Below are positions 18,157 to 18,450 of a DNA stretch of 24,395 nucleotides, piece after piece. Position numbers and translations under genes: made by a program. The notes beneath the pieces were generated by a model. It searched no databases. It saw only the letters and a list, made by a program, of their open reading frames with translations, and was not told the DNA's origin. Positions within the stretch are counted from its first letter, which is position 1. Each line of letters opens with the position of its first letter. Source of the DNA: Octopus sinensis (lineage: Eukaryota); contig NW_021836570.1 in assembly GCF_006345805.1 (NCBI RefSeq), positions 1-24,395 of the forward strand, read 5' to 3'.

Positions 18157-18450
18157 ACTTTCTTTATTAGCCACACAGGGCTGAATACAGAGGGGACAAA
18201 TACAAATGCAGAGCTTTCCTTTTCGAGGGTGGAAAAAAAAGAAAATAAATGTAAGATTGCGATCAAAAGGGATCGAGAGGAGGAGAAAAAAGGAAAGAAA
18301 TCGTGTATCACAGAAACAATGATAAAAACATTGATAAAACAAGATTGGGTTCATCCGTGGGAAGAAAAGCCTACAGAAAAGACCACGGGAACCCCAGTCA
18401 GGAAGGAAATAACCACATGAGATCAAAATGCTCTCTTTCTTTTTTACGAT

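Follow-up and report, generated by a model that had tools for sequence, protein, structure and literature searches.

A conserved 3′-terminal module common to octopod L1/Tx1-like LINEs and octopus SINEs points to a stringent-type partnership

The LINE of the window and its classification

The stretch of DNA analysed here, called the window, comprises 24,395 nucleotides of Octopus sinensis (contig NW_021836570.1, forward strand). It is AT-rich animal DNA, dense with microsatellites, and it contains two copies of one LINE and at least nine related SINE copies or units. The parts of the LINE copies and of their flanks are the following:

21877-24385, minus strand: 5′ part of the LINE, with an A/C-rich low-complexity stretch, ORF1 remnants and a CCHC knuckle
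18451-21876, minus strand: ORF2 remnant with several frameshifts (ORF2 start at 21876; zf-RVT region degenerate)
21409-21876, minus strand: APE endonuclease (PF03372), a Pfam domain in the LINE ORF2
19562-20306, minus strand: RVT_1, a Pfam domain in the LINE ORF2
18158-18205, minus strand: 3′-terminal tail module of the LINE (..TTGTATTTGTCCCCTCTGTATTCAGCCCTGTGTGGCTAATAAAGAAAG), the segment in common with the SINEs
18051-18157: composite microsatellite directly 3′ of the LINE tail, with GTTA(TCTA)n and then (TC)n on the sense strand
24386-24395: (TATC)n run, (ATCT)n at the window edge, at the presumed LINE 5′ junction and cut by the window end
1-160, minus strand: second copy of the same LINE, 5′-truncated, with the ORF2 C-terminus (79% nucleotide identity to 18455-18584)
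162-215: (TC)n(TATC)n directly 5′ of the truncation point of the copy at 1-160

The longer copy (18158-24385) is dead, as it carries many frameshifts, and its 5′ end would lie at 24385, a position deduced from where the (TATC)n flank begins. The 3′ UTR of the copy at 1-160 extends past the edge of the window.

The combination of an APE-RT-CCHC ORF2 with an ORF1 that bears a zinc knuckle is the design of the L1 superfamily. In the window LINE, the ORF1 zinc knuckle CYICGSEQHLKKDC (~22870-22911, minus strand) scores 20.4 bits against zf-CCHC, just below the cut-off of 20.8, and zf-RVT (PF13966) lies above its cut-off in the close relatives P0001 and P0121, where the motif CPRCAQSDETVLHALVQC is found. 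The order of APE and then RT is also seen in the relatives L003 and P0035. When the RT of the window is stitched together (query 2-329), its best match in the PDB, a collection that holds no CR1, RTE or L2 structures, is human L1 ORF2p (E = 1e-24). The intact relative P0001 aligns with residues 356-639 of the same human protein (E = 1.5e-21) and, therefore, the alignment covers the post-RT region (..KWxxxxxSxxGRxxxxKxxxxxxxxYR...LExxxxxFxWxxxxxxxxxxxxxxxxxxGGxxxP), while R2 proteins match P0001 over the palm only (E ~1e-11 to 1e-12). Because of the APE domain, the RT and post-RT alignment to L1 ORF2p, the zf-RVT of the relatives and the ORF1 zinc knuckle, the classification of this LINE as L1/Tx1-like, with Tx1 and L1 proper left undivided, is supported. 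The clade named in an earlier note on this DNA is thus upheld by domain content and by the ORF2p alignment, rather than by an RT phylogeny. The closest relatives returned by protein searches come from Octopus sinensis and Argonauta hians, and octopus repeat annotations include “L1-Tx1” families (PMC13282606). No other RT-coding LINE was found when the other long ORFs of the window were scanned with Pfam.

The sense strand of 21877-22860 and 23540-24040 (minus strand) is extremely A/C-rich and of low complexity, with long CAA/CAC-type runs. This stretch upstream of ORF2 accounts for the strong GC and AT skew observed at 22000-24000, and it could represent either the decay of an ORF1 linker or an expanded internal repeat.

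SINE units in the window

Several SINE units are found on both strands:

5669-5900, minus strand: monomeric SINE of ~232 nt, with head, body and a LINE-type tail at 5669-5716
17287-17700, minus strand: SINE dimer, formed by a full-length unit and a 5′-truncated unit of 184 nt, with a tail on each
9774-10296, plus strand: SINE array of three units, one full, one of 184 nt and one partial, with tail ends at 9994 and 10179
6765-6917 (minus strand), 9336-9494 (plus strand), 16994-17153 (minus strand) and also ~9700-9765: second SINE family, with the same head and body and a differing tail

The main SINE is short (~232 nt), non-coding and multicopy. Its head contains the B-box-like sequence GAGTTCAAATTCC and, from this motif and the published classification of octopus SINEs, a putative tRNA origin may be proposed, although neither ARAGORN nor Rfam called a tRNA in the head. 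A perfect target-site duplication (TSD) of 14 nt, AGAATCTGTACAGC, borders the dimer at 17272-17285 and 17707-17720. As this single duplication surrounds both units, the dimer must have been inserted as one retrotransposed unit. No clear TSD was found around the monomer at 5669-5900.

Head-to-tail units have a fixed junction, in which ..AAAGAAATA is joined to GGTATTTCGTC, at 17287-17700 (minus strand), at 9774-10296 (plus strand) and at 995-1361 of an Argonauta contig (L020). The units recur every 184 nt in the window and every 157 nt in Argonauta, and the stem of these tandem-type units is GCCC/GGGU and not GGCC/GGCU, that is, a flip from G-C to C-G. In the second SINE family, the tails read ..TTCCGGGCCTTGTGCCTAGAGTAGTAAA.. 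and ..CCGACCTTGTGCCTATAGTAAAAAGG(ATT)n. They look like a diverged LINE-type module that would have lost one base on each side of the stem, and they resemble the tail of a related LINE described below (L001), (ATT)n included. A third repeat family, with an internal (TA)n(TG)n and ending in ..GGCTTTGGTCGACCCGAGGATATAGTAGAATAC (sense strand), is present at 1990-2330, 8180-8580, 13040-13400 and 13670-14030; two of its copies belong to a tandem duplication of 627 bp with 99% identity (13104-13403 and 13731-14030).

A 3′-terminal segment in common between the LINE and the SINE

The earlier note had reported an ungapped match with 38 identities in 42 positions between the LINE (18159-18200) and the SINE (5670-5711), a count that we reproduced exactly. 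Both matched stretches are the extreme 3′ termini of minus-strand retroelements. The match is limited by the microsatellite flank on one side and by approximately position 42 on the other, and the likeness is restricted to the last 42-47 nt, as the LINE 3′ UTR and the SINE body are unrelated upstream of this segment. Read on the sense strand, the LINE ends in ...TTTGTCCCCTCTGTATTCAGCCCTGTGTGGCTAATAAAGAAAG, followed by GTTA(TCTA)n(TC)n, and the SINE in ...TTTGTCCCCTCTGTGTTTAGCCCCTTGTGGCTAATAAAGAAAT, followed by AT-rich flank; the two have the same end position, ..AATAAAGAAA(G/T).

This match is far beyond what would be expected by chance. When a 20-mer of the tail was searched with up to three mismatches, five sites were found in the window, compared with 0.01 expected from shuffles. 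Similarly, local alignment of the SINE tail with the window LINE tail scores 64, while shuffles score 13.5 ± 2.4 (a distance of ~20 standard deviations). The further tails that had been listed were also located, at 9974-9994 and 10159-10179 (plus strand) and at 17287-17306 and 17471-17491 (minus strand), so that five SINE units of the window carry the tail, four of them besides the copy at 5669-5900.

The tail in related LINEs and in Argonauta

Two protein searches and twelve contig look-ups, which covered relatives of this LINE group only, provided further LINE ends. LINEs from O. sinensis, Argonauta hians and two further samples end in one module, ..GTCCCCTCTRTGTTT..GCCCTTGTGGCYAATAAA(A)GAAAT, as follows:

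O. sinensis LINE on chromosome CM016876.1 (L019): ends in ...GGCTGTATTGTCCCCCTCTATGTTTGGGCCCTTGTGGCTAATAAAGAAAT (..ATTGTCCCCCTCTATGTTTGGGCCCTTGTGGCTAATAAAGAAAT), then unique DNA
Argonauta hians LINE (L020:7190): ends in ...TCTCTGTATCGTCCCCTCTATGTTTTTGCCCTTGTGGCTAATAAAAGAAAT (..ATCGTCCCCTCTATGTTTTTGCCCTTGTGGCTAATAAAAGAAAT), then (AAT)n
Second Argonauta copy (L020:848), 5′-truncated: ends in ...TTGTCCTCTCTTTTTTGGACCCTTGTGGTCAATAAAAGAAT, then (TAT)n
L001 LINE, 76% amino acid identity to the window RT: ends in ...GTATCGTCCTTAATGTTTCCGGGCCCTTGTGGCCAATAAAAGAAATC (..GGGCCCTTGTGGCCAATAAAAGAAAT), then (ATT)n
L022 LINE, with a variant of the module: ends in ...TGTCCTCTTGTGGCCAAT, then (CA)-rich sequence
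L023, of the same family as the window LINE: shows TTGTATTTGT..TCAGTTCTTTGT, and the contig stops inside the tail

The Argonauta LINE at L020:7190 has an intact ORF, with 69% amino acid identity to P0001. L023 is the single other copy of the window LINE's own family among the fetched relatives. The contigs of L021, L024 and L026 likewise stop before or inside the tail. No recognisable module was found at the ends of L025 and L027, which have (CA)n or a 17-nt tandem repeat instead. In L027 (a Logan contig, 1340-1462), the 3′ UTR ends in at least seven tandem copies of the 17-nt unit TATATTGTCCCTTGTTT, and the contig ends within the array; this unit includes the tail motifs TTGTCCC and CCCTTGT.

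When four LINE lineages are compared, identity is 70-89% over the last 45 nt and 48-57%, equal to the shuffle baseline, over the rest of the 3′ UTR; the ORFs of the LINE lineages are 68-78% identical at the nucleotide level. This distribution of identity supports the view that the tail belongs to this LINE group as its own conserved 3′ end, instead of being peculiar to a single copy.

The tail is also abundant outside LINEs in Argonauta, where a locus of 12.8 kb contains ~18 short elements that end in ...TTCGGCCCTTGTGGCTAATAGAGAAATCTAT or in near variants. Some of these elements have a body homologous to the octopus SINE, and some are 157-nt tandem units. As the tail occurs in two genera and in several SINE families, the partnership looks old and multi-family. 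Regarding its source within the group, AGCC in the 5′ arm is, within Octopus, common to the window LINE family and the SINE, while the O. sinensis LINE (L019) and all the Argonauta elements have GGCC or UGCC at this place. However, the SINE tail aligns equally well with the tail of the O. sinensis LINE (score 65) and with that of the window LINE (64) and, consequently, the donor may be the window LINE family or a sister subfamily.

In a more distant relative (L003, ~50% amino acid identity), the 3′ region has no significant likeness to the octopod tails, and its 3′ UTR (7180-7210) gives only a borderline match to the diverged tail of the second SINE family described above (“family 1”). The claim is therefore limited to Octopoda. 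Searches in collections that hold no cephalopod DNA returned chance matches: the LINE protein pattern gave 276 matches in metagenome contigs, none of them related; the tail pattern gave two bacterial matches in metagenome contigs; and an 18-mer of the tail gave 13 matches in viral contigs, none of which extends past the seed of 18-19 nt. Additionally, a protein of 466 amino acids (P0122), entered at NCBI as [quoted passage not shown], is 71% identical to the C-terminus of the cephalopod LINE; it most likely derives from host (cephalopod) contamination of a bacterial metagenome-assembled genome.

The stem-loop and the AATAAA hexamer

The small hairpins that had been written out for the SINE (TTAGCC/CCTTGT/GGCTAA) and for the LINE (AGCC/CTGTGT/GGCT) are both present, and their 3′ arm overlaps the start of AATAAAG. 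In RNAfold predictions, the stem of 4-6 bp grows to a helix of ~11 bp, in which UCU-G-U(A/G)UU on the 5′ strand pairs with AAUA-A-AGA on the 3′ strand, so that the AAUAAAGA motif would belong to the stem. The predicted energies of the tails range from -3.4 to -11 kcal/mol and, when compared with shuffles, the z-score is -3.1 for the SINE and lies between -1.9 and +0.8 for the others. RNAalifold returned no consensus structure over 23 genomic tail copies, in part because the apical stem has two registers (AGCC with a loop of 6 nt or GGCC with a loop of 5 nt).

When a named structure of 10 pairs is considered instead, 86.5% of the cells pair, and sliding the 3′ partner by 1-3 columns lowers this share to 41-49%. 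At pair 37-47, 12 copies have G-C, four C-G and one A-U, double changes are observed at two pairs, and one-sided changes keep pairing in eight of the ten. The covariation score is 0.185, compared with 0.152 in shuffles (7 of 500 of which reach the observed value), for an alignment of decayed and mutually related copies and a structure derived from these same sequences. Consequently, the covariation check that had been proposed for the hairpin gave a divided answer: there are a few compensatory changes and a modest score, but RNAalifold yields no consensus and most of the z-scores are not significant. A role of the hairpin in tail recognition is plausible and weakly supported by these comparisons.

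The AATAAA hexamer, for its part, behaves differently in LINEs and SINEs. Every LINE lineage with a complete tail has the canonical form (window 18158-18179, L019 7047-7069, L020 7168-7190, L001 1997-2018), while it is no longer intact in many SINE units, which read AGTAAAG or AATATAG in the window and AATAGAG in Argonauta. These losses fall at an unpaired position or at one that is still able to wobble-pair. The retention of the hexamer in LINEs and its loss in SINEs suggest that it also serves the Pol II-transcribed LINE, perhaps as its poly(A) signal, and that copying of SINEs by the RT may not need it.

A proposed mechanism and its alternatives

The sharing of 3′ tails between SINEs and LINEs is a textbook principle. 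In the present case, the tail is found at the same terminal position in both kinds of element, it is selectively conserved across LINE lineages and genera, and the SINEs have been retrotransposed with TSDs. We consider it probable that the ~45 nt are the conserved 3′ end of octopod L1/Tx1-like LINEs, copied on SINEs, and that they work by a stringent mechanism. The module consists of a short stem-loop and AAUAAAGAAAU, often followed by a simple repeat. In the model, the ORF2 protein, with its endonuclease and RT, would recognise this terminal module on its own RNA and start target-primed reverse transcription, and Pol III transcripts of SINEs ending in the same module would be copied in trans. 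Inserted elements end in (TATC)n, in (ATT)n or in no repeat, and never in poly(A), which fits a stringent mode and not the relaxed mode of mammals. As related LINEs keep the shared terminal tail, this LINE group is the likely engine of the abundant octopus SINEs, and a stringent-type SINE/LINE partnership is well supported by the sequence comparisons. Recognition of the tail by ORF2p, the contribution of the stem-loop as opposed to the primary sequence and the pairing of a particular LINE subfamily with a particular SINE family are further steps of the model, proposed rather than observed. The earlier proposal that the LINE mobilises the SINE through a 3′ hairpin stands, therefore, as regards the conserved shared tail and a stringent-type pair; the hairpin itself, with weak folds and modest covariation, has fared less well.

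Other explanations of the shared tail have to be weighed. It could be recognised as primary sequence or through the terminal repeat, the stem-loop being incidental, which we find rather unlikely. In agreement with such recognition, the loop and the 3′ arm (CCCTTGTGGCTAATAAAGAAAT) are conserved as sequence, unpaired positions included, the apical stem of the Argonauta LINE has just 3 bp, and the fold energies are mostly no better than those of shuffles, with no consensus from RNAalifold. However, the excess of pairing over slid partners, the changes at pair 37-47 and the tolerance of one-sided changes at eight of ten pairs are features of a conserved stem, and the SINE changes that destroy AAUAAA sit at unpaired or wobble-capable positions. 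Alternatively, the module might serve the 3′-end processing or stability of the LINE RNA, with AAUAAA as the Pol II poly(A) signal, and SINEs might have gained it by template switching while being mobilised independently of it. The different fate of the hexamer in LINEs and SINEs is what would be expected in that case, but SINEs should have no requirement for a poly(A) signal, and yet, across several families and both genera, they retain the remainder of the module precisely at the 3′ terminus. Moreover, no inserted copy has a poly(A) tail and conservation reaches ~30 nt upstream of the hexamer, all of which makes an explanation through RNA processing improbable.

Two further possibilities concern the identity of the driver. 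A LINE of another clade (RTE, CR1, L2 or others) could be the true driver of the SINEs, with the same or a better tail that the L1/Tx1-like LINE merely shares. Such LINEs are not lacking, as Octopus vulgaris has abundant LINEs of other clades, with recent activity (PMC13282606), and the Ceph-SINEs of squid and cuttlefish carry RTE tails (PMC5786205). Nevertheless, the module is terminal in no fewer than five lineages within one LINE group and varies from lineage to lineage, the AGCC variant is common only to the window LINE family and the octopus SINE, and the window holds no further RT-coding sequence. From the LINE ends compared, all of them from this one group, a LINE of another clade that matches the SINE tail better is thus unlikely, and a true driver outside the L1/Tx1-like group is very improbable. 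The remaining case, in which this one LINE copy captured a SINE end or a 5′-truncated SINE was inserted beside it, is hardly credible. Although the window contains a single full LINE copy with a visible 3′ end, the related LINEs end in the same module, each with its own substitutions and with an upstream 3′ UTR that is unrelated to the SINE. The outcome named in the earlier note as fatal to its idea, namely, that only this copy has the tail, is therefore excluded, and with the last 45 nt conserved among relatives a one-off capture does not account for the data.

Comparison with known partnerships

Tail-sharing pairs are rare in the L1 clade, as only three of 58 known pairs belong to it, all of them from maize or Chlamydomonas (Ohshima 2012, PMC3472496). 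The earlier description of such a pair as unusual for the clade agrees with this count; it has to be qualified, as stringent L1-clade pairs are already known in those two organisms. The maize ZmSINE2/3 with LINE1-1_ZM and the Chlamydomonas SINEX-3_CR with L1-1_CR are the closest parallels, as an L1-clade LINE has a conserved 3′ end of ~45-50 nt that is found on SINEs, the divergence of the tail is much lower than that of the whole elements, and a hairpin with some compensatory changes can be drawn (PMC3472496). Indeed, the stringent L1-clade LINEs of maize were defined by the same argument used here, that is, an island of terminal conservation in an otherwise free 3′ UTR (PMC3472496). By contrast, the maize L1 and L1-1_CR, from plants and algae, end in poly(A), while the octopod elements, from animals, end in (TATC)n, (ATT)n or nothing, and the octopod LINE group serves several very abundant SINE families. 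Algal L1-clade LINEs have also been described as ending in simple repeats (PMC3472496).

Among animals, the octopod elements resemble the eel UnaSINE1/UnaL2 pair and the tortoise Pol III SINE/CR1 pair (Ohshima et al. 1996; Kajikawa and Okada 2002, cited in PMC3472496 and PMC4824008). As far as these sources describe them, the last ~40-50 nt alone are shared, LINE lineages diverge far less in the tail than elsewhere in the 3′ UTR, the tail can be drawn as a small stem-loop, and the ends carry short simple repeats and not poly(A). The octopod LINE differs from them in being L1/Tx1-like and not L2, CR1 or RTE, and mobilisation in trans is, in this case, a prediction. A Tx1-type LINE has also been proposed as a SINE driver in crocodilians (Tx1-Mar and SINEU; Kojima 2015, PMC4494074). 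However, SINEU has no 3′ tail in common with Tx1-Mar and the link consists of target preference and poly(A), while in octopods it is a shared 3′ tail (PMC4494074). Finally, mammalian L1, which mobilises Alu or B1, belongs to the same superfamily, with an APE-RT-CCHC ORF2 and an RT and post-RT region to which the octopod protein aligns, but it recognises poly(A) and has no 3′ sequence in common with its SINEs, whereas the octopod elements have a specific terminal module and no poly(A).

Approximately 12% of the Octopus vulgaris genome consists of SINEs, an expansion considered to be specific to octopuses (PMC13282606, PMC8967140). The LINE partners proposed in studies of mollusc SINEs are CR1, L2, Nimb, CR1-Zenon and RTE (the latter for Ceph-SINEs, PMC5786205), and not L1/Tx1. 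In the literature that we searched, no LINE partner of octopus SINEs and none of the tail or SINE sequence strings was found, and papers on octopus repeats leave SINEs largely unclassified. The octopod L1/Tx1-like LINE/SINE pair is, therefore, new relative to that literature, Repbase aside.

If the partnership is true, it would give animals their first described stringent SINE/LINE pair of the L1 clade, and an L1/Tx1-like LINE group would be the engine of the octopod-specific SINE expansion. A named partner with a defined recognition module of 45 nt would make this expansion accessible to experiments, and the tail would provide a simple marker to sort many of the “unclassified” octopus SINE families by partner. 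An animal case would also bear on the question raised by Ohshima (2012, PMC3472496) of whether the ancestral L1-clade LINE was stringent, the “relaxed” poly(A) mode of mammals and flowering plants being derived later.

Simple-repeat flanks

For Tx1 families such as Kibi and Koshi, the insertion targets are microsatellites of the (TC)n, (TTC)n or (TTCC)n type (PMC4494074). Similarly, both LINE copies of the window adjoin (TATC)n on the 5′ side and the full copy does so on the 3′ side too, so that two copies offer a hint of target specificity. Only 160 bp of the window consist of pure (GATA) tracts with four or more units. These flanks may reflect microsatellite-directed insertion, as in Kibi and Koshi, or slippage of the RT. 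On the other hand, the O. sinensis LINE (L019) has no microsatellite flank, the Argonauta and L001 copies end in (ATT)n, and (TATC)n was not seen after the octopus SINE copies. A TSD of the O. sinensis LINE is not callable because its locus is locally repetitive DNA.

A broader reading would join all these features: an animal L1/Tx1 group with stringent recognition of its module (stem-loop and AAUAAAGAAAU) would have been co-evolving with several SINE families from a time preceding the split of Octopus and Argonauta, and it might prefer matching microsatellites for its integration. We hold this combined reading only tentatively and incline slightly towards doubt. The window also contains an “empty” (GA)n(GATA)n tract, at 3296-3521.
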